From contig OZ281501.1 in the NCBI GenBank assembly GCA_965637545.1, forward strand, positions 15,004,001-15,068,000: DNA of 64,000 nucleotides. The letters run 5' to 3'. Shown here piece by piece: positions 1 to 56,637 of the stretch. Position numbers and translations under genes: made by a program. Under the pieces are notes generated by a model. It saw only the letters and a list, made by a program, of their open reading frames with translations, did not search any database and was not told the origin of the DNA. The DNA comes from Phallusia mammillata. Taxonomy: Eukaryota. Position 1 is the first letter of the stretch. Every line of letters starts with the position of its first letter.

Positions 1-2538
1 TTCGTCTGGAGCTGGACAGGATATTATGCCACAAAACAGGTTTAGATCTGTCCAAGTAAAGTCTACAGTACATGTAACAACCGCACTACCAAATCCACGA
101 TGCCCTGAAAAACACAAACAATAGGTATAATTAGGTTATGAGTTGTTTAACATACAGAGTGGTAGAGTGTTAAAATTGGATTACGACTTATTGTGGTCCG
201 AATCAATTACGTTCTAGTTAGCCCCGAATCAAGCACGTTTAACCCAGTTAAACCTAATCCCGACCCGAAAGGTCAGGGTCAAGCTGAGTCGGACGTTGAA
301 GATAGTTTCTGCGTATTTTGGCATCGCGTCAAGTCTGTCTATTTTGGTTTTTAATCCGAAAAATCTTATTATTTTAAAGACTTTGAAACTCTTGGTTTGT
401 ATAGCTAGTCTTGACAAACCCGGAGTAAACTACTAGCATGGTTTGTCATCAAGTGTCAAAGTGGCAGTCAGATTTTTAGCTGTGCAGCCAATCAATGTCT
501 CCTAACATTCATTCTGGTCTTTATGTGTCATGAAAAAGACACTATCACAGAAGCAAATCTACAAATTCTGGTACAATACATAATATTCCAAATCATTGTG
601 TGCGAAGCTTTTTCAATGTTTAAGGAAGTCTATTTGCAATGTGCCAAGTTATCGCTGTCTGAACTAAAGGAAATTGGGGAAGTCATTAACATCGAAGAAA
701 AAACGAAAACATCAAGTTGTTGATTGTTTTCGTTGGTAATTTGTAAATGAATTAAAGAGTATTTTTTGACACTAAAGACTTATGCATAGTCGACCACAAT
801 TTATGTGTAGATCACTTTACACTGTAAAGTTTACAGCCTGACATAAACAAATACTGTATCATTTCTCCTGGGGGAATAAAGTCATTAAAAAAATTATTAT
901 GGGTAAAGTTATCATGAGTTAGAACATTCGCGACTCCAATTCAAAGTGCAAGGCGACCGCCTTGCGGGTCGCGCATCACAGGTTAAGAAACACTGATCTA
1001 GCTGCTTTGACAACCTGACCATTTTCACATCTCTTACCTTGCCGACATATGTAGTTAACTGATTGACCTGGACTGAATGCATCTTCCTGGGTGTCAGGAT
1101 AAGCATTGGCTTTGCGCCCAGGATACGAGCAACCTTCTGCAAAAAAACAAATTCGTGTGAAGTAGCAAATACTATTGCGCAATTGAACGAAATTAAGGCC
1201 TAAGACCATGCTACTCTGGTGCTTTAAAATAGTAACCAAGCCGGAACTACATACATGACGTACAATGTACAACAAGGTAGATGACATAAATTTCGAGTAG
1301 ATAGTATACGCACTACACATATACATATACAACTCTAAAGTTTTAAAGTAGTTCCTTTCATTTAAGGGTGAAGCATTAGAAAATAAGGACTGTTAACAAG
1401 ACACTTAATATAGCACTCTTGTAGAGAACTAGTTGCTTCGAAAAAAAAAAGAAATATAGTCTTGATATAGTCCCGAACAAAACTCATGGAATGGACCTCT
1501 GTTGTATTCCGTCGTACGCTCCGCAAAATTATCGACGTTATGTGCAGATAGAGGCCTAGTTAACAAACATTTTGCATTTATGTAACAGTGATCAAACGAA
1601 ATATGGGAAAAAATACTTTTAGAAAAACCGTTGTGACTCTTTTGTGCTTTACTTTACCAAATGTTTTCGTTGGTTGATTTGATATGTTGATTTTGGTTAC
1701 TTACTTATGCACTTTGCTTCTGTTCCCGACCATTTCTTGTCGCTGCGACATGACCGAAAAGCTTCACCCCTTAAACTATAGCCCTGGTTGCAAACATATT
1801 GAGCTCGAGAATTGTATTTTCTTGTTCTTCCGCGGTAGGTAACTCTTCCATCGGGTATCCCTGCCAGAGCTGGACATTCTGCCTCTGTGTAAATAACGCT
1901 TATTGATATGGAAAGCTGTCCTCGACTTATACAGTATAGCGCTATAACTAAATACTGGATTTTTTACTTTGGCTCATGGAAAACTAAAGACATAACACAA
2001 GAAGTATCGTTACATACTTGGATTAAAGCACGACAAGCCACAATCGTCGTCACAACGGCATTTCTTTAGAGCGCCCCTACAATCTACGTCCGTTGTACAA
2101 GGTTTCCTACATCTTCTGCCCTCTTCAACCAGGTCCATGAATCTTGGGCATCTTTGTGAATCGACTGCAAAATAAAACCAGTAAACTTGAATTTAGGTGT
2201 TTCGCATTACAAAATTGATCTAAGTCGTAACTTAGAACGCCTGATTTGGGTCGGAACAGAGTTGAAAAAAAAAAACGGAACAAGCCGAGGTAAAATAAAA
2301 GCCAGCAATATTTGAACCGGGAACTAATTGCTTTAAATAACCGTAAAACACAACTTTGAAATATTTTTCTGATCTATTTTTGTTAATATTTTTGTTGAAC
2401 ATCAAGAAAAAGGGATTAAAACCAGCAGCAACACACCATAAAGTGCTCAACTGCAGCTATAAAAAAATACAAAACGATTTACTACTCACCAATATGAAAC
2501 AATAAAGTTCCTACAAGAAGAACACACCACACTTTCAT
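1..2538 (-). CDS. Secreted WAP + CCP/Sushi repeat protein (LEV-9/Hasp-like), 3' end beyond the window
   Basis: GT-AG exons, all joined in phase 1: 2538-2490 (signal peptide [16 protein letters not shown]), 2164-2018 (WAP: [48 protein letters not shown]), 1884-1705 (CCP1: [13 protein letters not shown]...[30 protein letters not shown]), 1136-1038 (CCP2 first half: [32 protein letters not shown]), 104-1 (CCP2 second half and start of CCP3: [35 protein letters not shown]). The frame is open across all junctions. The LEV-9/Hasp label rests on domain order only. Confidence 0.88.
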
Positions 2539-3529
2539 GTTATGTTCTTCGTTTTTGTACAAAATTTCACAATTTTTTTGTCAGTTCATCTGGACGAACT
2601 TTTATTAACCTGTAGAAAACACGCCTTGTCTAAACGTAGAAAAAAAAGCATCTACAATGGCATTTCCGAAACATTGTTGTCATACCCAAGAACAAATAAA
2701 AAGCTCATTGCTACGCAATTATCAGGAAACAAAGTTTACAGATTTGTTCAGTCATGTATGGGAATTTTCTCCTGTATGCCCTGACAATTTTACATGGTTT
2801 TGTACAATTTATAGAGTACTAATTGATAATGAAGTCAGAGTGATCTATACATTTTGAATGTTTGTTCTAACTATTCCTGGCGGTTTAGCAGATCGCAATA
2901 AACAAATTCATACATTTGGTATGCAAATTCACTAACAGCCAAAAATACTTAAGTGAATTAACAATTATCCGGCCTTATGTTTGCCTGTAACTTTATAACA
3001 ACAATTTCGTTTTTGTGCCAAGCTAACCTTGAATGCTATTCGGTTCGGCAGCAATGTAATTTTACGCTTTAGCAAATTGAACGGGTGACGTCACATAATG
3101 CGCATCAGTTTGACGATTCGATTCCCTCATGTAAAGAAGCTTAGTAATAAATTCTGTATCGAAATAAACCAAATGGTAAATGATTTTTGCACTACACCGC
3201 TTTCTTCGTGTCTTAGACTATTTTAAACAAAATTAATGTTTCTAGTTCGTCCTTTTCACATTTGCACATGTGAATGAACCGTTTTTGTCGTAACGTATAT
3301 GTGTTTCGTTCTGACGCAGTATTCTATACATATTAAATTTATAAACAACTCTATGCTTTCTATGCTTCTTCAGCAAAGAACAAAGCTAAGTCTATTCTAA
3401 ATGAAGACTGTCTTTATTTTATCCAACAAAAACAACTAAAATGTCACAAACAATAACCAGCCTTCAACATAACAACAAAATGCGTCTTATTACATTTTTT
3501 ACAAGTAGAAGATTGTTATAGGATTATGT

Positions 3530-3950
3530 TAAAGCAAAATTTTCCAGTCTGCAAGTTTTTCGACTGAAGTCAGTGCTAATCACTCAAGCACTACTTCAAC
3601 CATTTTTGCTTTTCAACACGGCACGTAATTCTGTGATCGCTTGTGCAAAGCACCTGCAACTTCGCAAAGCACTGCAGGAAGCAAATACATTTGCGAACCA
3701 ATCTAGCGTTTTTGATGCCAATCTACCACAGGCACTTCCTGACTGAAACGACTTCGTGGCTCCCAAAAATTCCAATACCTTATGGGAACGTGCAACAACA
3801 AGCAAATGCCCTTTACTGAATCATGCGGTTTCCGGGAATCGGAAATCCTTTCTAAACCGAGAGAACTCAAATCGAAACTCTATTAGTTCTATAAATGCAC
3901 TTGAAAGATTTGAAAGAGCTTCCTGTCGTGCCTATTGCACCTTTTCAGTT
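3530..3950 (-). mobile_element. Interrupted reading frame, possibly a decayed retroelement gag-like fragment
   Basis: About 140 codons with 3 in-frame stops (ARQEALSNLSSAFIELIEFRFEFSRFRKDFRFPETA*FSKGHLLVVARSHKVLEFLGATKSF...LDWFANVFASCSALRSCRCFAQAITELRAVLKSKNG*). Visibly GC-richer than its flanks. The family assignment is only a resemblance. Confidence 0.2.
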
Positions 3951-4944
3951 GCCAAATGTGTGGTTGGTTGTGCGTCATTGGTGCCACACTGACTAGCTCC
4001 AGACGGGATTGGTGAAGGTGAAAAAATCAAATAGCTTCTGGTAAACACTCATCGAGTTTCGGTAGCATTTGTTCTGACCAACCAAAAACGACATGTAAAG
4101 GTTGATTTCCCTGGTCAAGGGGTAAAAAGCAGACTGTACCCTAGATTAGTGAAGGTAACTTATGCGGTAAAGGATTTACAATTTTTCTTAAAAGGGGAAA
4201 GGTTTTTAATTCAGATGTTGGATGCAGCCATTTTGTTCTTGTTGTACAATGTTAGTGTTACGCCTTCGGGTAATCTTGTTGTTTTCTTGAAGTTTTCTAT
4301 AGCAGCAGTCTACAAACGGAAGCAAGCATGGTTCAAGCAAGGACCATAAGTTGCCTGGGCTGGAACTTGTTATTAGACGTGTATTATGTGTTGAGTTTAG
4401 TTTATTTCGAGTGAAACAAATTGTGGCAGCACATTTGCGCTAAAATATTCACCAAGTTGCGCAACGATGAGACGTTATAAAACGCGACAAGTATAAGGCA
4501 CAATTGGTCGATAGATGGTAAAGGCGCTGCAGCAAGCGTTATGTAGTGGGACTAGCATTAAAGTTAAGGTTGGATTAATAGAATCTAAAACAACCCGTGT
4601 TAGGGAAATTAAAGAAAGATGCAGTAAAGAAGTGTAACATTGGAAGGTATATTGTTGCTTCAGTAAAAAGATTACTAGGCAAAATAAAATCTTTAAGAAG
4701 ACGCCTATTTGATTATTAACCGATGACACAACTAAACATAACTACACAGTTGTATCTAAATACTGTTGTGTCGTCTTTAACAGTTACTCATTACCTAACC
4801 ATGAAACGTTAAAAACTATGTTTCAATTCTCATGTAAAACGTTGGCTAAGTATTTTTCGAGAGTTAAACACACATTTATTTGTAGAAGTTTAAATTTAAA
4901 ATCTGAAACCTATATTCGCAGTTAAAATTTGGAATCCACGAAAT

Positions 4945-7900
4945 ATGCATAGCCTTCTGGCACTTGCAGTTCTTGCTCTTTGTATCATATGTAAGTGAAT
5001 ATTATATGGATATGTAGCGTGTTTAACGGTACATTTTGGACATAAACGATTTGACAGTCAAATTCGATTTGCAAGATTTGGGTCTAATAAATTTAAAAGC
5101 GTTTAGGTAACTACACATTTTTTCGCATTTACTTAAGTACATAAACGTAAATATAAACCGAGAGTATATATTTTTACCATCAAATTTTGCGTTACTTTTG
5201 TCACAGAATGTTTTGCCAATGCCATTTTCTTCCGTCAAAGTTATACGCTTAGGGATTGTGCGCTCTGACTGTTTAATTTGCAGCAAAGAAACATACGAAG
5301 CCAAGCTTGTCGTTAATCAAATGCGGTATTTTTTCAACTTAAATCATCCATCTCATATGACACACAAAACAAACTGGATTGGACATATTGCCGCATGTTT
5401 GCGCGCAAAATAAAAATCAAACTCAAATTTTTGTGTATCGGCCGAAAAAATGTGTAAATCTCTTACCTTATGGTTCAAATTTATGCAGCAACACAAGGTT
5501 CACGTTTATGTCGTGATGGTCGGTTTCAGTGCCCAGGTGACATTTGTCTCAACAATGACCAGTTGTGTGACGGAACGAACGACTGCTTTAATAACGAAGA
5601 TGAAAGCTACGAATACGCAAGATGCGGTGAGTGCAAAAATACTTAAAACACACAATTTAAAGCAAAGGGTAATTGTTGAAGTACGATGGAGCACAGTTGC
5701 TTTCTAGGCGCAAGGTCGTAGGTCCGAATCTTGTGTCGACTCCTGTGCATTTGTGATCAAACTCCAAAAATAAAGGAAGGGTATGGAGAGTATGGAAAGC
5801 AAACCAGTTCAGTAATGCAATTTAACGCTTTCTTTACACAAAAGCAAGATTTTTGTTATGTTTGTTATTAAATTTTAGTATAACTGTTAAATATAACAAA
5901 TGGTAAATATATTTTTCAAATTGCCAAGGTCGTTTTTGTAACAGATCAAAGAACTAGATCTAAAATCTTAAACTTGACATTATATATTATGCATTCCTGG
6001 TATTATTTTTAGCTTACCGGAATGTTTTAGTTCCCAAGCTAAACTTCGTTAAAAGCGAAGGATTTTATAAAACTTAGATCTATGTGAATTTCAGTTTTTA
6101 GATGCATAATGCCAACTCATATTTATACCTCTAAGTCGATCAATATGTAGGGGAATGCCCTCAGCGCGATTCTGATGCGGCTCAAGCTGCTGGACAAGAC
6201 TGCAGAAAACCTTGCACTTCTGACTTCGATTGCAGGAAGAAGAAGCGTTGCAGGTGTGACGGCCATTGCGGGATGTCCTGTTTCAATCCAAGTAAGTATC
6301 TTTTTGCTTTAAATATTCGGACAAAAATACTATTCACTTGTACATCAACAGGCATCGATAACCGCTGCTGTTGTTTTGTTGCTTTACGATACCCTAGTCT
6401 GTGTGTTACGTGCATTTGAAGAGAACTGTGGATCCAAATTTAATGAATTGCTTAAGTGCACAAAACTGTAACGAAATTTGTTGATAAGTGATATAAACCA
6501 CTAATAATATTACAGATTTTGCTAAGCTAAAATACAACTAGTTTTCAATGAAACAAATTAAACAAAAAGACCACACAACAACGAAACTTACCAGTGTAAT
6601 TTTATTTGTGAAAGTTATCATGATGGTAATAATTGTTGGTTCCGGGTAAAATGTATTTAACAAGTTGGTGTGAATTCAAGGCGGTAAAATTTTCTATCCA
6701 TTTCTGTAATCCACAGATTTGGAGTGCGAAGGAAATCCACCGACGGTAAACGGAAGCACTGGATTCAAAGTTTATCGTTTCGTCAATCATTCTCTGGTCC
6801 GGGTGACAGAGTATTTTCAGTTTGACGACTTTGTTGAGTATTCTTGTCCCGCCGGCATGGTCTCAATTGGTCCTCAAATTCGATGCACTTCGCGCAAAAC
6901 GTGGACCGATGCTCAAGTGCACTGTGCAGGTAAAAATGTGTCATACTGTTACGAAGGCTTGTGGAAGAATAGGAACGTTAATTGAATGTGTTAATTGAAA
7001 TTGAAAATAAAACAAGATTTCTTGTCATCTAACCACAAAATCGTCATTACACATGTGTGTCCAGTTTACTACAACTATTTTTTTTTAGTACAACTAATAA
7101 CTAATTTTATACAACTTATAATATGTTTGTGTCTCTGGTTAGATACGTTGGTCATTTAGTTTATTGTTTGGAACAAATGATAGTCATTTAGTTAAATAAA
7201 GGGTAATAAATGGCCCGTTTTACTAGTGATGTACAGATTTTTTTGGCCGAATTAACCTTTTTCACAAACATTCAGTTGGGCAAAAACGATTTTGGTACGA
7301 ACACAAATTCAAAGCGTAAATCGTGTATTTTCTGCTTAATAAGGAACCCAATTATCTTTTTAACTGCGCAAAAACTAAAATCACGTTTAATTTACGATCT
7401 TTAAAACTTTAGCCTCCACCCGGCAATAACTCATTCATTATGTAATAGCTGGAGAGTTAATTTATAGTGAAACTGTTTGCCTGATAGTAAAACTTATGTT
7501 TACATGTTAAACACGTAGCATAATAGATGCTTCAGTTGATTTGGCAAAGAAAGCCGACTCGGTGCATCACTGCGTTTGAGTTAAGTTTATTTCGCTTGGT
7601 AAAAGGCCAACTTAACTACTTCGCACAAAGGGTGCTAGCAATTAGATTAACGTTTTCAGCCCTGTGACTAAATCAAGTTGTGCATTCCCAACTTAACATA
7701 GTTTTGTAACTGAATGTAAAAGTAAATTCACAAAAACAAACAAATAGGCAAACTCAAATAAATTACTTAATCAAAACATGCGTTTAAATTAAGTTCTGTT
7801 GTTGCAGTTAAGTGTCGACCTGATAGCTACAGCGTAGGACTCTACAATCTGACTTGCGGAGAAGATTGTGTCACAGATGAAGATTGCACTGGCACGCAGA

Positions 7901-10900
7901 GATGCATGTGTGATGGTCCATGTGGAAGAAAGTGCGTCGACCCCCGTAAGTCAACATTAAAGTAATTAGGCTCTACGAATTTTGAAATGTTTGGTTTTAA
8001 AAGACGCCAAACAACGAAGACAAACAAGTAACCGTTGCTATACAAGTCATAGTAAACTGAAGCTTTCAATGCACCTACATCAATCTGTGTTACTCGTTTT
8101 GCAATGTATAATATCAATTTCGCCGATTTAATTGCATCCTCAGTTCTACGCAATAAATTCGTAGCTTGAATCATCTGTACTTAGTGCACGTTGGTTCAGG
8201 ACGATTTCTGCAAAAGCACAACTTATACAAGTAACTTATACACAATTTAAAATTTCCACATTCTTAAAGATTTTGCACAGTTTAAACCAGGGAGTCGAAC
8301 CGCTTGTTATATGGGTTCGGGTTTTTATTGTTTTGCTTTATGGGGCTTGGGTTCGTTTCAGGTTTTAAAAAATGTATGTTTTAGGGTTAGGGTTATTTCC
8401 GGTTCGAGCAAATTACTGTTGCGGTTTTCAAACCGATTACAATCCCTATTCTTTTAAAATAATTCTGCTCATTATCTATATGGCCTTGTTTTTGACCGTG
8501 TACTGCGGGAAAGCTTTAAGTTCGTTGGTTTTGACACGCCCTATAGCTGTTGTCTCGTGTCTATTCTTCAGTACGCTGTTTTGAAAAAAATATCACAAAA
8601 CATAACACAGGCTGCATTTTTACTGGTTCGATGTCGGTTTAACACTAAACAAAATGTAGGGTTCAACTCCGGTTCGAAGTTTAATAAAATCGTAATTTAA
8701 GATTCAAGTTTAATGAAATAAACCGCTCAAACTGGTTGGCGCGTTCGACTCCCTGGTTTAAACACAACCTCTAATTAGGAGTGTAAAAAAACATAAAAAT
8801 TAGTAAAAATTGTTTTTGGAAGTATTGAAATATTGTGTTAGTTTAATGGTGCGATTCTAGGCAATTTGTTGAGATTACAATTGTACTGAAAACCAGGCGT
8901 AAGAAACGATTCAAATTCTGATGCACTTGTTTCAAACATGTTTATTTAATATGTAAGCTATTGCTGTCAGGCATAATATCAAGTTTTATAGAGTTCTTCT
9001 GGCAATTGCATTTTTGTTCGTACTACGTGCATTCATTGTTATTTACCCTAATGAAGGCGACCTGTTATATAGGACGTCGAAACGTCGGAATAACAATACA
9101 TTTGCCAGAAGAGCTCTATAAAACTTGATGTTTATTTAATTAGGCCTACCATATTTACATCAACAAAAAGGAGGACACATTATTGAAAAAACATAAAAAG
9201 CTTTTTTAGGGCCCAATAACAAGAGCAAAATATATTAGACTTTTTTGGCAGTCAAATGATCCAATATGAAGTTAAGCGGTAATCACAATATTTTCATTAA
9301 CGTGCTATGTAAAATCCACCCATATTTCTTAAAATAAGCTGAAGATGTAGTCCTCGGCTGTTTTTAAAGGCATAACTGCACCATTGATATTTAGTAAATC
9401 AAAAAAATCAAAAAGGAGGACATTTGGGCACTTTTTATGGTCCTCCGAGGACAACTTGGTTTTTGTTAAAACGGAGGACATGTCCTCCAAAAAGAGGACG
9501 TATGGTAGGCCTAATTTAATGAGTATGTTTTAGATGTGAATTGCTCCGCTGCGCCCTCTAGGATACACACGAGAGTTGAGTACACAGATGAGGGAATTAA
9601 CCGGATTGCCAACTATCTTTGTGATTCCGGACACTACTTGGCAAGTGGGGACGCGTCACACAAATGTTCAAATTCCGGTCAATGGTATGGAGATCCAGTG
9701 ATATGTGAAGGTTGGTTGGAGCAGAAAGTGTATGTTGATTTATCCTAGTTCTATACCATGTTTTCATCACCAAAAAGGAAAACATATTGCTGAGAAAAAC
9801 ATGTAAGTATATTAACAGCTACTTACAGCACCAGCGAAAATAAAACCATGAGATATTTAACGAAATCCACGCAGTCAATAAATTTAGTCCAGTATGGATA
9901 AAGTTTAAATAAACGTTTAATTTTAAATCAACGATAAACACAACTTACACCAAATATGTGTTTGTGGTGTCACAAAGCTTGTGTGTTTAAAATGCACCTG
10001 TACTTTATGAAAAGATTAACTGAATGTGTGTTTTTATGAAAAGATTAACTGGATGTGCTGTTTTTATGATTGTGACCTAGTAAAATTTATGATTGTGACG
10101 TTAGTAAAATCCGAAAATTCTAGTGCATTGGAACATTATTTGTTGACCTCGGAGGCCATGAAATTTCCTGTTTAATTTAATTACTGACAGAAGCAAAGAT
10201 TTGCGATAAATGTAAATCCTAAGAAAGATTCTAAAATATTGAAACTGACACACATTTTACGCATTCAATGGCTTACCTATAAAATATACCTTACCATATG
10301 AAAACTTTGCTTTTTCAAACGTCAACGCAGACGGTGCGTTTTGGGCATCGTACCAACCATTCCTGAAAAGCAACATGTAATCATTACAAATTAGGTTGCA
10401 ATACAACTATATATTGGTACATGAACATAAATTTGGTACATCAAAACTTTGATTAAAATAGATGCACTGATTAACAGATTTATACAGTCGTATGCTACAG
10501 CACCAGTAATACCTTCACAAAGAAACACCTCCATCAGTTGACAGCAGTAAACACGTTAACGTTATTTTCACTTCATACTTTACTGAAATAACTAGAATCT
10601 TGCAAGTTAAACTGAAGCTTTCCAACCAACAAACTTCCCAACTGCCCTAGCAAGCACGAACGTATGTTTGTGCGAAAACTAAAGCTTTGGGTGTGGCTGG
10701 CACCAAAGTCTATATAAAACACAAGTTGTCCAACCTATTGTTACGCAATTAAGCCTATGGAGTCATTTTGTGTCCAAAATGATACAGCGGGTATGGAAAA
10801 ATAACACATAAATTGTCTGATTTTTACAACATGGAGAGCTTCGACGCGAATTTGATTCGCCAAATTGAATGAAAATTTCGGGTTCTAACATTTCAACGCA

Positions 10901-13900
10901 ATATTAAAAGCTAAATTGCTGTTTTTCATGTAAATTTGGCCGCTTAATTTTCATGTGAACTTTAAATATTTGCGTTCAGCGAACATTATCACGCTCAAAT
11001 GTTACTACTCAAAAGCTTTATTCGATTTGGCCTATCAAATTCGCGTTAAAGCCCACCAGTTTGTAAAAATCAGACAATTTATGTGTTTTTCCCTATACCT
11101 GCTGTATTAATTTGGACACAAAATGGCGTCCATGCGGCTCTATCGCGTAACAAAGGGTTGGACTACTAACATAACATAGGAACACCATACATGGATTTGA
11201 AGAGCAACTTAATCATAACCATAACTGCCAAGCTTTTATATCAACAAGTTCCTTGGCAATTATGTTTATGTTCACTTTTTTAGACGTACCACCATACTTG
11301 GTAAATCAATTTTTTAACTTATAATTTCTATCATATAGATTTGCACTGAACATTACCCGTAATTAATTTGCATCCTCAAGTTAAACATTGTGTCATCATT
11401 GCAGTCTATTTCACAATATTGTTCAGTGTGTCAAACTCAGGTTATGTTTGGTCAAATGGTTAAACGGTTGGGAAGGTGTCCAAAAAGTCCAAACAGTAAA
11501 AACTTTTGAAATAACCTATATGTAACAACAAAACAAACTTCAGGAAAGTTTTCGATCATAATTTTACTCGGGTATTTTAAACCACAATTTTAGAAATCTT
11601 CTGTGGTGATCCAACAAGGCACCTTGCTCGGCGAAATCTAATTCTCGAATCCGAAAGAAATGATACTTACGCTGTTAACTCGACGGTGCGATTTCGCTGC
11701 CAGTCAGGCTACGTTTTGAGCGGAGCAGCGAACCGTACGTGCATGGAAAACGGACGTTGGAGTGGATTATTGACAGGATGTCAATTCTTGGGTAAGATTT
11801 AAACATTGCCTTACCCGATATGGGAGCGCCGTGGCAAGTACTTATTTTAGTGTGACCTAATTTGGAACAATAAATTTATAATAAAATTATTATTTTGGGC
11901 TTCCTTTAAATAATTGCTGTTGCTTTTTTGAGTGCAAAATAATTCTTATAATCGTGCTTTAATCAGTCAGTAAAGTTTATAAACGTACAGTGTGTTGTGT
12001 GAGGCTGCTTATGTCAAACTGAAAATCTAATTTTGTAAAGCAAGCCCGCGTTTTGTCATTAAGCTGTCTAAAACATAAGATAAAATTGGGCATCTTTAAA
12101 AACGATTTTTGCGACCCACTCATAACAGGATGTGCAGCGAGAAAGTGGCTGAAAACACTGTCTTCGACTTACGAATAAAGTATAGATTCGCTACGATTTT
12201 TTTCGTTACATGCAAGCTTATTATGAGTATACCTAGTGTAAGCTGTGACCTACATTTCCCAAATTAAGTTGTACACGTGCAAGTTCGTAACTATCAAAAT
12301 ATATGTTTGTCAAACCCAACAAGCCCAACCACAATGTTACACAACAACAGGTGCAACTCGTTCAAAACGCTTTATTGCATGCGCAATCAGTGCCGATTTG
12401 ATTGAAGGAAACAGTAGTTCTCGAATGTAGTTCATTCGAAATACTTCCGCAAGCTCAAACGTCTGCAAGTTTAAACAACATGTTTACCACACGCCCTGTG
12501 CCCTCATAAGATGACAAAAAGGTCACATTTACCTAGCAAGAATCTAGTTTTGTTAAATGTAATGTCTATCTTTCTCGCTTTGTCAACATTCAACACGGGT
12601 TGTAGTATCGTATTCAATTGCTAATAGCCAAGAAATTACGTCGTAAATTTATAAACGTTTTTTTTAACAAAATGAAATCTTGTCCCTTTCCTGACCAATT
12701 CAAGTTTGCGACTTGCCGCCACACTCTATCTAAATTCTATCTCAAAAAATGAATCCCCCAGTTTTTACTTGGAAACTCATTTCCCAGAGATGTTGCAATA
12801 ACAATAACTAGATAGGGGACCGCATTAACAGCATGTTGTCTTTCCCCAGTTTTCACTTAGAAACTCACTTTTTAAAGAAGTTGCAATAACAATATCTTGA
12901 TAGGGAACCGCGTTAACAGCATCTTGTTATAGTTTGTAAGCAGCAATGTGACCAAAATATTAGCTAAATGACTTATGAGTTATTTATCTACTGCGGGATA
13001 TAAAAACTCACGTTTTTATATTTACCACAACCACGTCCGTTCACAGCCTTTTATATGCAACAACTATAGTGCGCCACACACAGGCAAAGGAAAAAAAAAC
13101 TGTTACAGAACTGCTGACCGAACAAAATACCAATAATTCAACGCGAAGTCACAGACACAAATGAAAGCATTACAGTTGTAGCCTAATTTGTTTTGTACAA
13201 GACTTGACCTGCGTCGGTTGTCGCTTGTCGTTGTTAACTTATTTTAAATCATCAAAATTATTAATGAAAAACACTTAAGGTAGTTGAATCAAAAAATTTT
13301 ACTGTAAAAAACGTTTTCATCAGATCACTCAATAAGAAATCATACTAACCTACTTTAGGTCAACAAAGAAGATGCCCTGACCCCGGAGTACCAGTGCACG
13401 GAAGTAGAGATGGTGATGACTTTGACGAATCCCGTACAGTACGTTTCGAATGCGATCCGAACTATACCATGGAGGGAGAAGCAGACCAAGTGTGTTTGTG
13501 GTCTTTGGAATGGAGTGATGGTGGAGCACCGCTTTGCCTGGGTAGGCATTTTGTGTGTATTAAATTCCTGACTTTTTGGTTATGTTTTAATATATTTTGC
13601 ATTCCTTTACTTCAGACAACTATAAACGTGCATGTGTAAATTTAGAAAAAAAGGATATGTACGTGGCTTTTAAGCATGATTCTTCCTTTCAGATGCTATT
13701 TGTTTGTTTTGCCTTCTTGGCTGTCATTTCCTCGGTTATCGTTCGTTTTGGATCTTTGCACTAATACCAAAACTTAACTTGCATCAAACTTTTGCATTTT
13801 TGTTTTGTATAGTATTTCTAACTTTGTGATTATACAATAAACAGACCCTAGGTACCCAGACAGTGCGAGCGACTCTCTCCGCAAACTTGCTGGAAGCGTT

Positions 13901-16900
13901 GCAACCCTCCCTCAGCGTGGCTTTGGACGTTCGATTTCCACGACGGAAGGCAAACACCACGAAATTGCTTTCATATTTGATGCGTCCGACAGCATTAAAG
14001 ATGTCCAGTTTATGTATGCAATCGCATTTGCAAAGAACTTAGTAAAAAGGGTATGATTTTTTAATATAAGAGAGCAACACATGCAAAAAACTGATTTCAC
14101 TGTAACATACCTTTTGCAGCTTTCAAATTACCAAGCTAGCATCAATTATGGATTAATGGTGTTTGGTAGTGATTTCGAAGTGAGGATTCGTTTGCAAGAT
14201 AATCAACAAAACTCTACAGCTGTTCTCGTTGAGCTTCGCAATTGTCTAGAGGATTATAGAAGCGGTGAGAAATTCATACGTTAAGTTGTATAAGTTTTAT
14301 TTCGCTTAGGTGAAAGAGAACATAGCGACACAATAGCACTAAGCAGAAAAATTCTGCCCAATGGTGAAACGTTTTGGAGCGCAAAACGGATGGAGGATCT
14401 AGGGCTGTTATCACACAAATATTATATGATTTTTTGAAATTTGTAATTATTTCAAAATTTTTTAAATAATTTCAAATACAAGCAAATAGTTTTTTCTATG
14501 CAATAAACCTCGATATATGTGCAAAATCAATTTTACATTTTTATAAAATTGCGGTTACACAGAAGCACTGCAACATATGTTTTCAGCCGTATATTAATGT
14601 TCATTTACCCATTCCCCCAAAAATGTTGGACAAAAAAGCATGACAATTTACTGTTTATTCCGGTATTAGTTACACCCAGGAATAACTAAAGTTATTCAAG
14701 CAAGTAAATAAAATGTTATAGATCACAACTCAATTCAGCAAGTATCCAAGAAAAAGCTGTTGAAATAAAGTGAAAAAATACACACGGAAATACATATGGA
14801 TTTGCAAAATTACGGAGAGTAACTGAAGCATGTCTCTATCTGTACTAATTTATTATTTTAAACAGAAAAAAAAGAAGTAGCCTAGATTTAATGACTATAC
14901 GAACTTACAAATTCATTTCGTAATTTCAACTACCCTTATTTAATAATGACTCTGGGCCTGTATCAGATATTCTAGATTATTGGTATTCTAAATCATGTAT
15001 AAGGTATTCTAAATTATTTAAATTATTTGATTATTTGAGTTGAAAGGAAAAAAATTATTTGAAAATTTCAAAACCTTTATTTGATAACAGCTCTAGGTGG
15101 ATCATGGTTGAACGCGCTGCAGCCACGCCAATTTTCTTGTGGTAAAAAGCATTGTGTTTCAGAAAAGTGCAATTTTTACAGGACTTTTTACCGAAAGATT
15201 ACGAGGCAACACGGCAACTAACAAAGCGCTAAAGGAAATTGGCAAACAAATGGCAATAAGCTCAAACAATGATCGTGATAAGGAACGACATTTCTTTTTA
15301 TTTACAGATGGTAAGTAGTTCTGTATTGTAAACGTAACTTGTTTGAGTAACTTGTTTCATGCAGGAAAAACAAATGAAGGAGAAAATCCGTATCAAACCA
15401 AAAATGAGATGCTTAATGAATTTGGTGATGTTCTCGAGGTGACCAGTTTCAAAATTTTTGTTTTAAAGTTTGTGTAAAATATTCTGTTTTTTTTTAAGTT
15501 TTGTTTGTTCATTTTTAAGCGAATTTTAAGCCGGTGCGCGAACGACATGTAATTGAGTGAAAAGTTGTTTTTTAGATTTCAATACTGAGCGAGTCTAGGT
15601 CTTCAGCAAAATATAAAGTTTAAACAACCCATAAACAAGTTAAAATTGGATGCTTTGAGTTTAAAGTGCAGAATAATTTAACCGGGTAATAATACAATGC
15701 CATCATATTCAAATAATTGCCCAAATATGCATATAAATGCACAGAGGAATGTCGCCCATTTTTGACAATTGCAGAAATGTTTTGCTTCTGAGTAAAAGTT
15801 GCTTACAATTTAACGCGGTCGGGTACATCTTAGATATACGTTGTCACGGCATGCACGTCGTGCAAAAATTTCGATCAGGAATCTCGAGACGCCGAGAAAG
15901 AGATGAGGCGGTTGGCAAGCAAACCCGAAAACTTTATTCGAATAGAGAACTATTACCTTCTTAACACTTACCTTGACGAGGTCGCAAATTTTACCACTGG
16001 TGAGTCATGTCACTTTAAGTAAAGTTGAGTGAGAGACATTTTGGATACAAATTTTAACGCACATAACACTACAATAATTCTAGAGGTAAATGTTTAACAT
16101 TAAATGTATTTAAGTCATATATGCATAATGTATGAGTATCTATTCAGATTTTCAGTTTTTTGTGGATTGGAACATTTGACAGCTGTCTGGTTAAATGAAG
16201 GATATGTGAAATGTTTTGTTTACAACATAAAAGCAATCAGTTTCACTTTGTATGACACTGAATCTAAATATTTGTAAATTTTTTCCCGTGATCCAATTTA
16301 AGTTGTTCAACCATGCGATATCAAGCAAGACCATGCCCCCGATACGGTGTTTCATATAAACTGTTTATAGTACTTTGGCTATATTAGGAAACAAAAAGAC
16401 ACAAAGGCGAAATATCATAAAAATCTGACGTTTTTGACTTTAATACGTTTTGTGACCGTATTGCTACAAACACTGCAACCCACATCAAACAAAAAGTTGC
16501 AAAAAGCCAATAGATGGCGTAAAGACCTAAAATATCACATTAGCACCTAAACAGGAATGGTGTTCGGAACTAAAGCTTTAAAGTTAGTTTTATTGGCATT
16601 TTTTAAAACCTTCTCCAACCCAGACAGCTTTGGTCATAAGCATTTGGATCATTTCCACTGGGCACCAATGCTCTTTGCACCAACCATCATTATTTAGCAC
16701 TTTTTGTTAGATTTTTAAACGAAAATTTTAAACCAGATACAGTATGAATTAGGACGAAACGATGCAGCGAAATTCTGTATTATTTTGTTTGAAAAAGTGT
16801 TAGTTTTTTACAAACAAAGTAGGAGCAGTTAATAACAGGGAGCAAAATACCTCAGCCACAAAGTAACAACTATGCCAAAGGAACTATTTTTTAAACATAC

Positions 16901-19900
16901 CGGATATACAATGTGATAATCACACATACACGTAACATAAATGTATTGGTACTAAAACTAATTTACTCCCAATGATCTTTACTTCTAGATTTAAAGAAAT
17001 GCGGCCAAGCTGGGAAAAAGGACAGTATTTTCCACAAAAAGGCGTTCGGCCGCGTCATTGGAGGAGGTAAATCAAAAAGAGCCTGGCCGTGGCAAGCTGC
17101 AGTAATGCCTAAAAATGGATTAACAGTTTACAGTGTAAGTGGCCTTTGTTTCAATAAGAAGTCCGCGTTCAAAAAAGTTCGCTCTGAGAATTAATTTAAA
17201 ACGTTTTTGGTCGATGCAACTATCTTACTATGGCGCTTTATAATGCCCGTGTAGCTGCATCGCGTTCTATTATCACATTCTACTTTATATTTATAAGGTC
17301 CCTTTGGTGTCCCACCAGGTTTTTTTTAAGGTTTGGTTTGGGTGACCGCAAAGTAGTTTTAAGAGACCGCAAGTGTTTCATTTCAATACCAAAAAATAGC
17401 CATTTTTCCTAAAGCTGTAGTTGCAAGTCCAAATTTTGGGAAACCGCTACGGTCCCCCAAAACACCATAAAAAAACACTGCTTCATTTTTAAAATTTACT
17501 TATTTTCCATCGGTTTCACTTAATGATTCTTTACCTTCACAGAGCTTTAAAGGGATATTCTCTGGTGGAAGCCTTATCAATCAGCAATGGGTTCTTACAG
17601 CCGCTCATATATTTGACAACTACGCCGACATCGAACAGCTGACAAGCACCCTGGCTGTGGCAGTAGGTAATAACAACTTTTTTAATACCGTTTCGTCTTC
17701 CTTTGTCGGATGGCGCTTGTAAATCTGTGATATTTTTTCTTTTTGTCAGGTATTTTCGTGCGGCCAAAGCCTAGACAAGCCATTAACCCGGCCATGAAAG
17801 TTTTCCAACCGCGAAGAATTTTTATTCATCAAGATTTTGATCGAGAAGATCGCGATGGAAGAAACAACTTTGATCATGACGTGGCACTGGTACGATTTAA
17901 TATTGTTTCAAAACAGAATCTCAGTTTCACGTTTGTTAAATTTTGATGGCTCATTGGAAAAATGAGTGTGGTCAGTATTTTGTTTTGCTGCAAACTAAAA
18001 AAAACTTCTAAGAAATGTGATACTTTCAATTGCCTTAGAGATGAAGCGAAACATTTCACATTCAATTTGAACAAAATGAGTGAAAAAAACGTTATGCCAT
18101 TTGATTTAGCTTGTAACTGAAATAAAAGGAAACCAACAACGCCGCTGGTAGTTGATTTTTTACAATGTTATCAGTGCTGTAAAATATCAAGATTTTAACA
18201 GATATAATATAAAACAATCACATAATGAAACGGAATATAACCCAATCTAATTGGATCGTTTGTTGAGATTGCAATAAGAAACAAAGGTTGTTTAGATTCG
18301 AATCGGTGTGGCACTTCGAGCCATCAGAGATGGAATTGATTGGGTTTGGTCGACCAGAAAACCAGAGTTTGACGGAACTATCCCCCTTTCACCCTATGTG
18401 AGACCAATATGTCTGCCCTGCAGCAATACTTGTGTCCCCATTGACAAGTACGTGGACCAGAATGGAAACCGAATAATTGAAGATGGAGACTCCGAGGATG
18501 TCAAATGTCAAAAGAAAGGCAAGTGGAATGACAGTACAAAACACGCGTGCAACAAAAATTTGCGCGTTAACCTTGACTTGGTAATAATCAAAGTGTAAAA
18601 TCCCAACTTTGTCGTTAGATATAGTTTCGTCCTCGCGAGAAAAACAGACAAACAATAGACTAAAAATTGTACAAATCATTTACCGAATTATCATGTTTTC
18701 AAACTTAAATTTGTAAACATTTCGAATCAAGTATGAATTTTCCCCTTGTTCTGACCACATATTTTTCCTCAAAATGCCCCACAAATTCTGTACAATTTAA
18801 ATTGGACTTGTTGGGTTGTACAGCTATTGCAACACAGGCAAGCATTTACAACGCTTTCTGTATGCAGGAAGATGGATAGTCGATGACTATGTTGAAGTTA
18901 GCAGAATACCTGTGATCGTTACAGGATTTGGAAGATGGACTTTGTCTACTAACAAAACGGTCCCAATTCCGTACCGTCTTAAGGAAGCAGTCCAACAAAT
19001 CCAGTCAGATGCCTCGTAAGTTTGAGTTGATAACAGTAATGTGATGAAGCGTTAGTGAGAACGCACCTTGCAATTATTCAACCTTTAACCAGGCCTTAAT
19101 GTTCGAATTTGGTCTTGGCGCTCTGTCATACGTCGTTAATGCTAAACCATTTGACTTAACCAGTAGTTCTCAACGTAAAGTAGTTCGATTTATGAGAATC
19201 GAGTGACAATTCTCTCAGAAGTTGTCATTTTGTTTTGCGCATGTCATTTCTTCTTCTATACGAATTTTAATGACAAGATTTACATTTGCATAAAAAATAT
19301 TGTAAAATTGTTTAGTTGCGGCAGTGTTTAAGAGATGATTAGTGGTGCTTTAATATTTTTGAATGCTTGTATCACCAGATGCAATGAAGAAGTTGAAAAG
19401 ATAGCACGATCGGGAATACGTTTTTTGTACACTAATCAGATGATTTGTGTGAAAAGTCCTGAGTGGTTGAATACGGTGTCTGACACATGTCAGGGAGATA
19501 GCGGTGGACCTCTTATGCGAGAGGTATATGTGCAATTGGGTAGTAAGCTTAATACAAAGTAAATCTATGTTGTTGTTTTTTCAAATGGTAAGTTGGTGAT
19601 CATTTACTCAAAACAAAGTTTTTAATGCCACTTCGAGCATTAGCAGTAGCTAACAAGAGTTGTAAACGTGCCAACTTTTTCGAATAATTTGAAAAAAGTT
19701 ATTTTTTTTAATCCTGACTACTTCTGAAAGCTTACGTCATCGAACGCAGGTTTAGGCATATAAACAACATTACAACCTTGGTTTTAAGTACAAGAACCCG
19801 AATACCGGAGAATCGTGTTGGATTCAAATTGGAATTGTCAGTTTTGGCTACAGCTGCGCTAAAGTTCATAAAGATGGATCTGTGTATCCATCATTTTACA

Positions 19901-19956
19901 CAGAAGTTTCCAAGGTTCAAAGTTGGATTGAATCAACGATGAACGATAATCCTTAA
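4945..19956 (+). CDS. CFB: Complement factor B/C2-like serine protease with extra LDLa and WAP domains (about 1029 aa)
   Basis: 21 exons: 4945-4990, 5284-5325 (uncertain, can be skipped in frame), 5489-5626, 6151-6291, 6717-6929, 7808-7945, 9534-9710, 11594-11791, 13359-13541, 13845-14050, 14120-14264, 15182-15310, 15365-15438, 15834-15999, 16989-17134, 17543-17666, 17750-17889, 18296-18518 (GC donor), 18868-19015, 19379-19523, 19789-19956. Total 3090 nt in one open frame. CCP-CCP-CCP-vWA-protease core; MIDAS DASDS...T...TDG; triad TAAH / DHDVAL / GDSGG; Bf-type ICLPC motif. Confidence 0.93.
5489..5626 (+). CDS. Factor B-like gene: LDL-receptor class A exon
   Basis: [39 protein letters not shown]: six Cys and the acidic DC...DE motif; phase 1-1 exon. 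Confidence 0.9.
6151..6291 (+). CDS. Factor B-like gene: WAP (four-disulfide core) exon 1
   Basis: [47 protein letters not shown]: eight Cys, CxC in place of the usual CC; tag|...|gtaagt; phase 1-1. Confidence 0.88.
6717..6929 (+). CDS. Factor B-like gene: CCP1 exon
   Basis: [12 protein letters not shown]...[31 protein letters not shown]: four Cys plus the conserved Trp; phase 1-1. Confidence 0.88.
7808..7945 (+). CDS. Factor B-like gene: WAP exon 2
   Basis: [46 protein letters not shown]: eight Cys, CxC variant; phase 1-1. Confidence 0.88.
8288..8755. mobile_element. hAT-type MITE, 468 bp
   Basis: 13-bp TIR CAGGGAGTCGAAC / GTTCGACTCCCTG; perfect 8-bp target duplication GTTTAAAC (8280-8287 and 8756-8763); internal GGTTCG repeats. 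Confidence 0.85.
8978..9129 (+). mobile_element. Short element with 28-bp terminal inverted repeats enclosing a decayed hammerhead-type core (Penelope-like remnant)
   Basis: atcaagttttatagagttcttctggcaa versus ttgccagaagagctctataaaacttgat (1 mismatch); core 9048-9088 CTAATGAAGGCGACCTGTTATATAGGACGTCGAAACGTCGG. Confidence 0.6.
9141..9513. mobile_element. MITE with TAGGCCTACCATA termini
   Basis: 13-bp TIR; repeated GAGGACA sub-terminal motifs; flanking direct repeat ATTTAAT (9134-9140 and 9514-9520). Confidence 0.75.
9534..13541 (+). CDS. Factor B-like gene: CCP2, CCP3 and CCP4 exons (9534-9710, 11594-11791, 13359-13541)
   Basis: Each exon is one CCP with 4 Cys and Trp. The last ([27 protein letters not shown]) has the CPDPG.P start typical of the CCP preceding the vWA domain in Bf/C2. 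Confidence 0.9.
10726..11165. mobile_element. MITE with imperfect TIRs of about 105 bp
   Basis: 10726-10829 is the reverse complement of 11061-11165 (gtccaacc..ttgttacgc..ttttgtgtccaaa..acacataaattgtctgatttttacaa); right end in TA. Confidence 0.75.
12754..12927. repeat. Diverged tandem duplication, period about 89 bp
   Basis: Two copies of tccccagtttt...gaaactca...gttgcaataacaata...gataggg.accgc.ttaacagcat.ttgt. Confidence 0.75.
13845..15999 (+). CDS. Factor B-like gene: linker and vWA domain exons
   Basis: QRGFGR|[22 protein letters not shown]...GNTATNKAL...[13 protein letters not shown]...[10 protein letters not shown]...[17 protein letters not shown]; MIDAS residues intact; five exons, with introns as short as 54 and 69 nt. 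Confidence 0.9.
16989..19956 (+). CDS. Factor B-like gene: trypsin-family protease domain exons
   Basis: KCG...AFGR|VIGG...AWPWQAAV...[19 protein letters not shown]...DHDVAL...VRPICLPC...VTGFGRW...[13 protein letters not shown]...[12 protein letters not shown]...[14 protein letters not shown]; catalytic Ser codon AGC at 19500-19502. Confidence 0.92.
17316..17480 (+). repeat. Dispersed repeat, copy 1 (small TIR element)
   Basis: caggtttttttaaggtttggtttgggtgaccgc...aagagaccgcaagtgtttcatt... matches the reverse complement of 20659-20778 with few differences; ends in aaaaaaacactg. Confidence 0.75.
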
Positions 19957-42000: not shown

Positions 42001-45000
42001 TCCAGCGGGAATATTATGCGACTTTTTATATTTGTAATGGTTTTGCTTGCGTTTGTGGTGCGGTATGCCAATGTGTTGTTGTTAAATGCAATTGATAATA
42101 TTTCGGTACAGTTTTGTAATGAACTAATATATATATTTGGCTATATCTTTGACGTCGAAAATGATTTGAATACCGCCTTATGCATGTGTGACCGTTTCTT
42201 GTTGGGGATGAAACCGCAGTTGTTTCAGGATAAAGATACAGTTTAAATTTAATGTTCAACTAAAGTTTATTGTTACAAAATACGAAGCGAATGAAAATAA
42301 CTGCATTAAAATAAGCTGTTTTCATAAACACACGGTAAAACAAAATGCACTGTTGTATGGAGTGATTGTGCATTTTGAGCAACCATTTGGCATCTTTAAA
42401 CACTGGTGGCAAAAAATGGCAAAAATGCCCTGCGGATAAATTGCCACCATGACTAACCCAGCTGGCGCAATTTTAAATCAAAACATTTTCCATTTTAATA
42501 ATCGGAGTCCAACGCACCTACAAACAATAGATGGACTCATGAAGTGATTCACATTTCCATCTATTATGTCCCACGCATTGTTTTCACACAGCTGTGAATA
42601 TTATTTGTCCAAACTCGATAAAGTTGCCATGATATTACGTGGAAACCAAATCTATGTGCTGGGATGATGATATGACTGTGGTATGTTCGTGGTGTTGTGA
42701 AAAATGTAATATTGCTGTCTGTAGAATATGGGATCTTTTAATTCTACCGTTCCCGCGTGAGGTTTGTTATAACTACTTTCTCAGTTGTGTAGGGTATGAG
42801 CTTTTTATCAAAAGTTTATGAAATTGCACTCATTCCATAATGCATACCACAAAACGTTGTAAAAATACACTTGGGTAACTTTTAATAACAAGTGGTTACT
42901 ATTATGGTGCTAAAAAAATCAATGGTGAAACTTCCGCAACAGTTACAAAAAAGCAAGTGAAACTAAATCAATTATTTGAAACATGCTTTGAGAAAGCATT
43001 CATATACATTCAACTTATGCGGATTAAGCTTAATTCCTATTTTACGCGGCGAATTCCATACTGTGTTGCGATCCAACAACTGCGCAGCAACCTCGAATTA
43101 AAAGTTCAAAGGTCAAGGGTCGCCGCGGTCGATTGTTCTGGACCAAGTTCATCTTTTGATCTCTCTTATGATTGGTAGGTTCAGCGAACAGCACAAGCAC
43201 TTCGGAGTCCAAATCCCAAGCGCGCAACTTAAACCTCATCACTTGCGAGGAATGCGGATTGATTTGCGCCGGACAGAGTCACTACCAAGTTCACATTAGG
43301 TCGCACACTGGTAAGAATAAAGTGTCAATAAGTTCGCTAGCAGGGGTGAACTTTTTCAACATATTGTAAATATCCAATTTTAGGGCAAAAATTGCATCAA
43401 GTTTCAAAACGTCCATTTGGAACTTTAACAATTTTGAAGATAATGTATTTTTAATGATAGAAATTAATTTAAAGTAATCTCTTTTTTAAATTTTAAATTT
43501 CAAACCTCATGGAAGCATCCAGATACCACGATAAGAATCTGATCATTTTCCCAAATTTGTAAAAAAATAGGGTCGTTTGTTTGGTATTTTAATGATAATA
43601 CATAACGTTTAAATATCTCCGAATATTTACAACTTCGTCGTTTATAACAAAGAACCATAAATGTACAAATAGGTTTTGGTGTATTTTACTCAACCGCGTT
43701 GTTATTGTACCACATGAGCAGTCATTGTTTTCTTGTTAATGAAGTCTTCTTGCATATGGCTAGTTACTAATAGCATCGGTGCAAATTTATTAGCTTTTTG
43801 GACGTTCAACCTTTATTAGACTTACGTGTTTCAGGAGAGCGCCCTTTCAAGTGCAACATATGCGGGGTAGCGTTCACACAGAAAGGAAATCTACGGCGTC
43901 ATTACAAGATTCATTCGGAGGAGAAACCTTACCAGTGTCCTGTGTGCTCGTACAGATGTCGAAGACGGGATGCATTAAATGGACACATGAGAATACATTC
44001 AGGTGATGCCCTAAACTTATTTGTGCATTTTTTTGGAAACAGCCAAACAGTAAGGTCCTAGATCTAATGGTTTCGGTTGGCCCAAAGAAAGAAACAGTTG
44101 CAATGACTTATTGGACTAAGACGCTTATGGGCTACATTCGAAAATCCTGCTCGGAATTAGTACTCAGCAGCGCACCGGGTTCAAAGAATAAAACTTAATT
44201 CCACGTACTGGTGTGGCAATGAGTGTTTAAGTCTCTAAAAAAATAAACGGAATTAAAGCTACTACTTGTAAGTCTTAGGAAAGTGTTATAATTACCGCAG
44301 AAACTGTAGTAAACTTAAAAACAACAACATGCCATTTGAGTTTTAGAATTATGGGTAACACACAAGTGACATTAAGTCATTGTTTAACGGAGATTTTTAC
44401 TTGCATATTTATGACAACAATCAATGTATTGTAATAGCTGAGTCTAAATTTTATTTGTTTTTCATAATGTTCATTTTACTCCAGTCAGTACGATATGTTG
44501 TTATTGTTTTGATTTAGATGTGCGTCCCTACCGATGTGTCTACTGCGCACGAAGCTACAAATCAAGACAGTCACTTAAAGAGCACGAATACCAATGTCCC
44601 TACAAGAACGACCCAGTGGCTCAAGGTGAGTTTTTGTTTCATATTCAACAAACATTTTTGCCAACCTTTCATTAAGTATATTTCGGGAGAAATTAAATTT
44701 GGTTTTTGTTAATTTATTTGCTCTGGTAATTTCAATATTTGCTCAGCATTGTTTTTTTTTCGTATATGTGCTTGTCTGTATCTTTTTCAACTTTGTCATT
44801 TTTGTTTCCTAGTTTTCGCTCTTTTTTCATTTGGTTGTGAGCAGAAAATTGCAAGCACCTTTCACGGCGAATTGAAATCCCAAGCCCTTTAAATATCCTT
44901 TTGAAAACCACAACCAACTTGAACATTTTTGTTTCCGGCGATTTAGGCATCATCGTGCATAATAAGCGCCTAAAAGTTAGAAAAACCTAATTTCCGCATT

Positions 45001-54589: not shown

Positions 54590-54782
54590 CTTGATGAAGT
54601 ACCACAAATTGGTCTTCTTTTACATTACACCTAAATACCTGAAATACAGTATCATGAAATAACTGCAGTCAATAATAGAAAACAATATTGCATCAAAAAA
54701 CTTTTATGATTAGGGAATTTTTACCACATGTAAAAATTTCGGTTTAATACATGGCAATGGCAGCAAAAGCTGGGATACACTT

Positions 54783-56261: not shown

Positions 56262-56637
56262 TGTGAAGTAATAAATTCATAACCCTACAAGCAAGCTGCA
56301 TAAAATGTATTGCAAACTAAAACAAACATACTGTTGAAAGTTTGTTAACTGTTGAATGATGTTAGATTTTAATTAGTTTGTTCTATTCCGTATCACTAGG
56401 AAAAATCAAAGTAGCAAATAATTTTAAATAATGCACAATATTTGATTGAATGTTAACTAACCGCATTACCCGAACTTAGTAAAACTTACACTAGCTTGGC
56501 AAAACTTTCATTTTTGCGTTGAAACAATTGACAAATATCCAATTTTATAATTTCAATTTCAACGTTGTGGATATTTTATTTCTTGCGCTGCTTTGCCTCT
56601 AGTGTCAGGAGTTTTATTCCAGAGAAATAATATACAA

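Follow-up and report, generated by a model that had tools for sequence, protein, structure and literature searches.

A head-to-head WAP-CCP gene and factor B gene in Phallusia mammillata as probable members of an old ascidian cluster

In the genome of the ascidian Phallusia mammillata, two neighbouring genes are transcribed in opposite directions (ATG at 2538 on the minus strand and at 4945 on the plus strand, with 2407 bp between the ATGs), and both carry a WAP exon followed by a CCP exon: the plus-strand gene encodes complement factor B (Bf), a convertase protease, and the minus-strand gene a protein of WAP, CCP and other modules. They lie in the left part of an AT-rich stretch of 64 kb (GC of about 36%; assembly GCA_965637545.1, contig OZ281501.1, positions 15,004,001 to 15,068,000 of the forward strand), called the window below, in whose coordinates positions are given. 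Did factor B take its WAP-CCP unit from this neighbour, or are the two genes inverted paralogues? Does a shared promoter co-express the protease and a candidate regulator? These ideas formed the original prediction, whose observations are confirmed in every detail, but whose interpretation is borne out only in part. As developed below, the pair probably belongs to an old ascidian cluster that arose through duplication and shuffling of phase-1 modules, in which both genes would act and be regulated separately.

The head-to-head arrangement stands at the spacing given above, and so do the features shared by the two genes. Each has a signal exon and, further on, a WAP exon of phase 1-1 and of the CxC type that ends in AATCCAA before gt (in the minus gene, TTTAATCCAA followed by gtatgt; in factor B, TTCAATCCAA followed by gtaagt), with a CCP exon next, and all of these elements are found in the sequence. 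The WAP core strings, coordinates, exon phases and splice-site letters reported for them are exact, and the core match of 22 out of 31, which included a gap column, corresponds to 22 of the 30 core columns in a hidden Markov model (HMM) alignment. The WAP homology of both genes is real and not a product of chance, since the deposited Phallusia factor B protein (P0003), used as a tblastn query within the window, matched the minus WAP exon with E = 1.7e-8.

To what extent is this likeness particular to the two neighbours? A profile of both WAP exons was searched against 1.84 billion representative proteins, giving 148 hits with 210 WAP domains. Across 142 distinct cores, identity has a median of 16 and a 90th percentile of 20 positions, to be compared with the 22/30 of the neighbours. 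Seven distinct cores from other genes nevertheless match the core of the first factor B WAP (WAP1) at least as well as the neighbour does: a second Phallusia protein (P0005) at 24/30, and six others, including Clavelina proteins and the amphioxus protein P0034, at the same 22/30. Seen from the minus gene, four cores are better matches than Bf WAP1 and three more tie with it; taking either window exon, eight other distinct cores tie or exceed 22/30. Over the whole WAP+CCP unit, the minus gene and Bf WAP1 are 43% identical, with the minus unit reaching 62% against P0005 and 52-57% against three Clavelina units, and the Bf WAP1 unit 49% against amphioxus, 47% against Clavelina Bf and 45% against an Anopheles protein. 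Judged by these sequence comparisons, the two WAP exons are at least as close to several unlinked or foreign WAPs as they are to each other: of the "closely related" exons initially proposed, the homology holds, but the special closeness does not, as seven other cores do equally well or better and the units share only 43% of their residues.

The marks that first drew attention to the pair are equally widespread. In the three WAPs of the window (a third like exon, also phase 1-1 and CxC, encodes factor B WAP2), all eight cysteines are present, but the adjacent CC pair that the PF00095 spacing has at Cys5-Cys6 is absent, a single residue splitting the two cysteines (CRC, CRC and CMC). All three exons still exceed the PF00095 gathering score of 20.8 bits, and the CxC form is found in 205 of the 210 WAP domains of the recovered proteins, heading proteins of Anopheles, Drosophila, thrips, leafhopper, wasp, Caenorhabditis remanei, amphioxus and two corals. 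It is a conserved WAP subtype, not a defect. At the Clavelina locus described below, six WAP exons end one base past the last codon (phase 1), two of them reading ATTAATCCAA followed by gta. Both the CxC form and the AATCCAA boundary before gt were considered as shared derived marks of the two genes, and were rejected because they are family-wide.

The divergence between the two exons speaks of age. Synonymous sites are saturated (pS 0.79, against a pN of 0.30), 15 of the 27 identical residues are encoded by different codons, and at the nucleotide level the two loci match only over 50 nt within the WAP exons, the introns and flanks being without similarity. A recent duplication or gene conversion between the neighbours was rejected on the basis of this pS and of the confinement of similarity to those 50 nt. 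Saturated synonymous sites combined with this pN suggest strong purifying selection on the CxC subtype. As a caution, a 70% match between short cysteine-rich domains is no proof of recent exchange where an entire subtype is so conserved.

How do the units group when compared together? A maximum-likelihood tree was built from 63 non-redundant WAP+CCP units over 106 columns. In this tree, Bf WAP1-CCP1 joins the first unit of two Clavelina Bf-like proteins (support 96/85), with amphioxus as the next branch (93/93), and Bf WAP2-CCP2 joins the second Clavelina units (99/92). For the minus unit, the partner is P0005 (90/84), within a clade of 31 rows (99/95) that excludes Bf WAP1, and every member of that clade that was looked up comes from Phallusia, Clavelina or Styela; an Anopheles Hasp-like unit is placed outside it, the deep forks of the WAP+CCP tree being open. 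A tree of the CCPs only concurs, with Bf CCP1 beside Clavelina Bf CCP1 (98/84). According to this tree, the WAP1-CCP1 head of factor B predates the split between Phallusia and Clavelina.

The two gene kinds are also found together in other ascidians. At locus L001 of Clavelina lepadiformis, a Bf-like gene containing WAP1 and WAP2 shares its strand with a WAP-CCP part that lies some 5 kb downstream of these two WAP exons, and one gene model fuses both parts; a second such tandem unit comes next, and after it a gene with Sushi, TSP1, Lectin_C, EGF and fn2 domains. By accession numbers and contigs, many Clavelina WAP-CCP and Bf-like genes are on one chromosome. Along positions 10001-31167 of L001, the public models fuse the tandem Bf-like/WAP-CCP repeats into proteins of 1.3-1.9 thousand residues. 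Another example is Styela clava (locus L002), where the minus-strand protein P0143 resembles the Phallusia minus product in its N-terminal layout, with a WAP-CCP4-MAM head to which Lectin_C, TSP1 and further CCPs are joined. Its start is about 0.9 kb from that of a plus-strand CCP-WAP-CCP2-protease gene, head-to-head, and a Bf-like WAP-CCP-vWA-protease part lies farther downstream in the same model as this protease, with more WAP-CCP-protease genes after it. Within L002 (1-57406), a second copy of the 5' part of the protease gene, 90% identical, is present about 21 kb downstream. The linkage, whose absence from related species had been named beforehand as what would speak against the original prediction, is thus found in both species, in tandem in Clavelina and head-to-head in Styela: linkage of Bf-type protease genes with WAP-CCP mosaic genes is conserved in ascidians, but orientation is not. 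Word-based searches with the two Phallusia proteins of the window gave no match assignable to Ciona, which says nothing on absence from that genus.

Within the cluster, WAP-CCP heads move or duplicate locally. P0005 of Phallusia mammillata has the order WAP-CCP2-protease-CCP3; its protease is 51% identical to that of P0003, and its residues 606-741, which comprise two CCPs, match residues 475-610 of the minus gene product (P0002) at 85% identity. Parts of both gene kinds therefore appear to recombine, as P0005 combines a Bf-type protease with P0002-like CCPs. This protein, which tblastn does not find encoded in the window, is either a hybrid paralogue of both gene kinds or a chimeric transcript model. 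Outside tunicates, a model from the coral Oculina patagonica (P0222) has a CxC WAP, two CCPs, MAM and trypsin, beside CCP2-protease and vWA-CCP6 parts, and with such a protein the WAP-CCP-MAM and WAP-CCP-protease combinations may predate bilaterians.

Taken together, these data make it probable that the window holds two separate genes of one old ascidian cluster. Both would start with one ancient block, a CxC WAP on its own phase 1-1 exon and then a CCP exon, which tunicates would have multiplied by tandem and inverted duplication and by phase-1 exon shuffling and put at the head of many genes, Bf-type proteases included. If so, the WAP likeness would follow from the ancient shared block and its multiplication in tunicates, a deep paralogy still recognisable because strong purifying selection acts on the subtype, with no recent transfer between neighbours, and the head-to-head orientation would be one local arrangement within the cluster.

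What if the transfer was local, although not recent? Within the phlebobranchs, a linked WAP-CCP gene could have supplied factor B with its WAP1 exon, with or without the adjoining CCP, either as a new acquisition or as a replacement; the source would be the lineage of the neighbour or a P0005-type paralogue, and the mechanism phase-1 exon shuffling or gene conversion in the cluster. Several results favour this scenario, and three of them (the WAP-only tree, the AU tests and the Styela units) also weigh against the cluster reading given above. The best core matches of WAP1 are with P0005 and then with the neighbour. The WAP-only tree, although poorly resolved, places WAP1 nearer to the tunicate clade (with the neighbour and P0005) than Clavelina Bf WAP1 is, which leaves room for an old exon-level exchange in the Phallusia lineage. 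In approximately unbiased (AU) tests, the window units as sisters are not rejected over the 106 columns (p = 0.117, or 0.197 with their partners), nor is sisterhood with the neighbour for WAP only (p = 0.148), and the latter alignment does not reject orthology of WAP1 with Clavelina Bf WAP1 either (p = 0.30). Finally, the Styela Bf-like unit is sister to the unit of the linked, P0002-like P0143 (99/91, 60% identical), so that local exchanges or duplications do happen in this cluster, and P0005 mixes both gene kinds as described above. On the other side, the unit and CCP-only trees join Bf WAP1-CCP1 to Clavelina Bf at starred support, the neighbour ties with six other distinct cores, amphioxus P0034 among them, and the CCPs following the two WAPs are dissimilar, the Bf CCP exon being 33 nt longer. 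With synonymous sites saturated and flanks without similarity, any capture would have to be ancient. The best tree thus opposes the idea that factor B took its WAP-CCP unit from this neighbour, while alignments of 50-100 columns would still accommodate an old exchange at the exon level (AU p = 0.12-0.20 for sister units), and we regard a local capture as unlikely.

A second part of the initial interpretation, inverted paralogy of the whole genes, depends on how the minus gene continues beyond the left edge of the window. RNA-like contigs (runs X6 and X7, from the same organism) carry its introns 1137-1704, 1885-2017 and 2165-2489, with GT..AG ends and zero mismatches. They cover its first exon over 2490-2630 and 2490-2611, spliced to 2164, and the 5' untranslated region (UTR) is at least 92 nt long, as these contigs reach 2630. 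A loose end of an X6/X7 contig before 1037 matches 71-103, supporting exon 5, and about 2.66 kb of the X6 contig lie to the left of 1037. P0002 (1611 residues) is identical at 193 of 193 positions to the spliced minus-strand N-terminus of the window and is therefore taken as the product of the minus gene. According to Pfam and regular-expression scans, it starts with a signal peptide, a WAP (20-65), four CCPs and a weak MAM-like stretch (307-418), followed by EGF (441-471), three CCPs, TSP1 (707-754), a second EGF (934-961) and CCPs to the end; its strongest generic matches are CR1/CR2-like proteins. Pfam and motif scans of P0002 found no vWA domain, no trypsin domain, no GDSGG motif and no transmembrane segment. 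The alternative ends proposed for this gene were a vWA-serine protease part or further CCPs: it is the latter, and the gene is rejected as a factor B paralogue, and with it the inverted whole-gene paralogy. Judged by its fold, the minus product most likely serves as a secreted binding or scaffold protein with many CCPs. By analogy with CCP regulators it could bind a C3b-like ligand; alternatively, like LEV-9 and Hasp, it could organise matrix.

The plus gene has the order signal, LDLa, WAP1, CCP, WAP2, three further CCPs, vWA and serine protease. It corresponds exon by exon (tblastn) to P0003 (1018 residues), deposited as Phallusia mammillata "CiBf-3 complement factor B-3 precursor", in which Pfam detects Sushi, VWA and Trypsin. 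The succession of CCPs, vWA and a trypsin-like serine protease is that of factor B/C2, and the expected motifs are in the open frames: the MIDAS motif DASDS (DxSxS) in 13841-14053, and the catalytic TAAH in 17471-17719, DHDVAL in 17731-17943 and GDSGGP in 19332-19559. Its domain order and motifs identify the plus gene as a complement factor B whose N-terminus is extended. One X7 contig joins the LDLa exon to WAP1, and another passes 6291 into letters matching 6717-6746 at 29/30. Both of these Bf RNA contigs (LDLa/WAP1 region, 5487-6291) are shallow and differ from the window by 7-9%, and may therefore derive from another allele or from a paralogous Bf. This divergence, together with a spliced N-terminus only 93.7% identical to P0003 (266/284), suggests that Phallusia has a second Bf allele or else a recent paralogue. 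No second Bf copy was found in the window, where the Bf open frames and tblastn matches are confined to 1-20 kb. A literature search on WAP in ascidian factor B or CiBf returned no relevant paper.

The features of both genes are collected in the table, for which the Sushi cutoff was 20.7 bits. Elsewhere in the window (43774-49006 and 53032-56276), plus-strand open frames of C2H2 zinc-finger type and, on the minus strand, a long coiled-coil frame and an RRM-type frame were noticed, unrelated to the WAP pair.

Table. Exons and other features of the divergent pair, in window coordinates.
Feature	Position	Strand	Description	Evidence
Minus gene exon 1	2490..2630	-	5' UTR, ATG 2538, signal peptide; coding 2538-2490, ends phase 1	Sequence and RNA contigs X6/X7
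Minus gene WAP exon	2018..2164	-	147 nt, phase 1-1, CxC type	Pfam WAP 27.4 bits; RNA contig joints 1884/2018 and 2164/2490
Minus gene CCP1 exon	1705..1884	-	180 nt, phase 1-1	Pfam Sushi 41.5 bits; joints in RNA contigs
Minus gene exon 4, first half of CCP2	1038..1136	-		RNA contig joint 1136/1705; spliced translation identical to P0002
Minus gene exon 5, second half of CCP2 and start of CCP3	1..104	-		Spliced translation 193/193 identical to P0002; X6/X7 loose ends
Intergenic spacer	2631..4944	.	At most 2314 bp, from known minus 5' end to plus ATG	
Factor B exon 1	4945..4990	+	ATG, signal peptide, ends phase 1	Sequence; spliced N-terminus 266/284 identical to P0003
Factor B LDLa exon	5489..5626	+		Pfam Ldl_recept_a 31 bits; X7 contig splice to WAP1
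Factor B WAP1 exon	6151..6291	+	141 nt, phase 1-1, CxC type	Pfam WAP 25.7 bits; splices in RNA contigs
Factor B CCP1 exon	6717..6929	+	213 nt, phase 1-1	Pfam Sushi 20.6 bits, 0.1 below the 20.7 cutoff; X7 loose end
Factor B WAP2 exon	7808..7945	+	138 nt, phase 1-1, CxC type	Pfam WAP 26.8 bits
Factor B CCP2 exon	9534..9710	+		tblastn of P0003, 95% identity
Remaining factor B: CCP3, CCP4, vWA, serine protease	11593..19953	+		Open frames, tblastn of P0003, Pfam on P0003

Do the two genes nevertheless form a functional module? The spacer could be a bidirectional regulatory region co-expressing the convertase protease and a secreted WAP/CCP regulator, with the arrangement under selection. Both gene kinds are indeed linked in three ascidian species, and Styela P0143 lies head-to-head with a WAP-CCP2-protease gene at a short distance; known complement regulators are moreover built from CCP arrays, and the candidate regulators listed for Ciona include CCP proteins (PMC5465252). 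However, the Clavelina WAP-CCP part is downstream of Bf on the same strand, the head-to-head partner in Styela is not the vWA-bearing Bf-like gene, and a binding or regulatory activity of the minus product is predicted at most. The spacer itself contains no Rfam family and no notable internal repeats. High-depth spots occur there in the DNA runs (4411-4456, up to about 2600, and around 2700-3100, up to about 190), where numerous contigs end loosely to the left and right, and look like dispersed repeat fragments; the piece 4418-4456 is present in RNA-like contigs too. Divergent same-species DNA contigs cover the spacer poorly, leaving most of 3100-4300 and all of 4700-5299 without a match at 90% identity or more, and the known ends of the two genes are up to 2.3 kb apart.

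The RNA-like runs do not favour joint expression either. Each of the runs X6-X9 holds a share of 0.08 of the sampled words from 1-6300, which in X6 and X7 is the spliced minus mRNA, but the 6.7-kb 3' half of Bf is missing from all RNA-like runs listed (shares of 0.00-0.03), the only Bf RNA contigs being the shallow and divergent ones mentioned above. Since contigs do not report expression level, and indexed words are lost where alleles diverge, this presence or absence is a weak hint against tight co-expression. That both genes are regulated separately, as the cluster reading has it, is by the same token probable in a weak sense, a point that counts against that reading. A functional two-gene module with selection on its arrangement seems improbable on balance.

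A more ambitious variant would place the pair itself in the ascidian ancestor: a WAP-CCP-MAM gene facing a WAP-CCP-headed Bf-type gene would have arisen by inverted duplication of a promoter-signal-WAP-CCP cassette, and been kept in Phallusia and Styela since the spacer co-regulates the convertase protease and a CCP partner controlling it. Should this be true, the ancestral pair would represent a primitive convertase-regulator module, but we hold it to be quite doubtful. Last, it is hardly credible that the head-to-head arrangement is an assembly artefact: nothing was found in favour of this, although only the runs X1 and X2 of one study (possibly the source of the assembly) contain most of the stretch. 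For 1-6300, the shares of sampled words present in X1 and X2 are 0.91 and 0.78, the window has no N runs, and a comparable arrangement exists in Styela.

The favoured reading, an old cluster of separately acting genes, bears on the way a complement protease, factor B, gains or loses domains. Ascidian Bf-type proteases carry WAP-CCP heads of the kind seen in insect, nematode, amphioxus and coral proteins, and in three ascidian species their genes are clustered with large WAP-CCP mosaic genes, a concrete case of phase-1 module shuffling in a linked family. The cluster also supplies candidate CCP partners of the convertase.

Which known systems does this locus resemble? Bidirectional pairs, which are usually defined by about 1 kb between starts, likewise consist of divergent genes with no annotated feature between them, whereas the known ends here lie up to 2.3 kb apart. 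The vertebrate cluster of regulators of complement activation (RCA) is likewise made of genes for CCP-rich secreted proteins growing by tandem duplication, but the ascidian cluster includes the gene of a convertase protease, and its members are WAP-headed and, as regards complement regulation, candidates only.

The minus product is closer in plan to LEV-9 of C. elegans and Hasp of Drosophila, which also have a signal peptide and a single N-terminal WAP directly before CCPs (one WAP and 8 CCPs in LEV-9, one WAP then up to 17 CCPs in Hasp; PMC9083331). The same CxC WAP heads recovered proteins of Drosophila, Anopheles and Caenorhabditis, and some Clavelina relatives are named "lev-9-like" by NCBI. 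In contrast to the LEV-9/Hasp type, in which only CCPs follow the WAP, P0002 is more mosaic, with the weak MAM-like stretch, two EGFs and TSP1 among the CCPs of its 1611 residues, and its gene is part of a tunicate-specific expansion linked to Bf-type proteases.

The plus gene shares with factor B/C2 (vertebrate Bf, CiBf-1/2/3 of Ciona and Halocynthia Bf) the CCP-vWA-serine protease core, the DxSxS motif and the His, Asp and GDSGG Ser motifs. It is similar to Ciona Bf, with four CCPs in both and about 1018 residues against 963-999, and its LDLa recalls the LDL_A given for Halocynthia in a published domain table of ascidian Bf (PMC4714745). That table lists WAP for no species, whereas the plus gene has two CxC WAPs interleaved with its first CCPs; the same WAP-CCP-WAP-CCP head is found in the Bf-like proteins of Clavelina.

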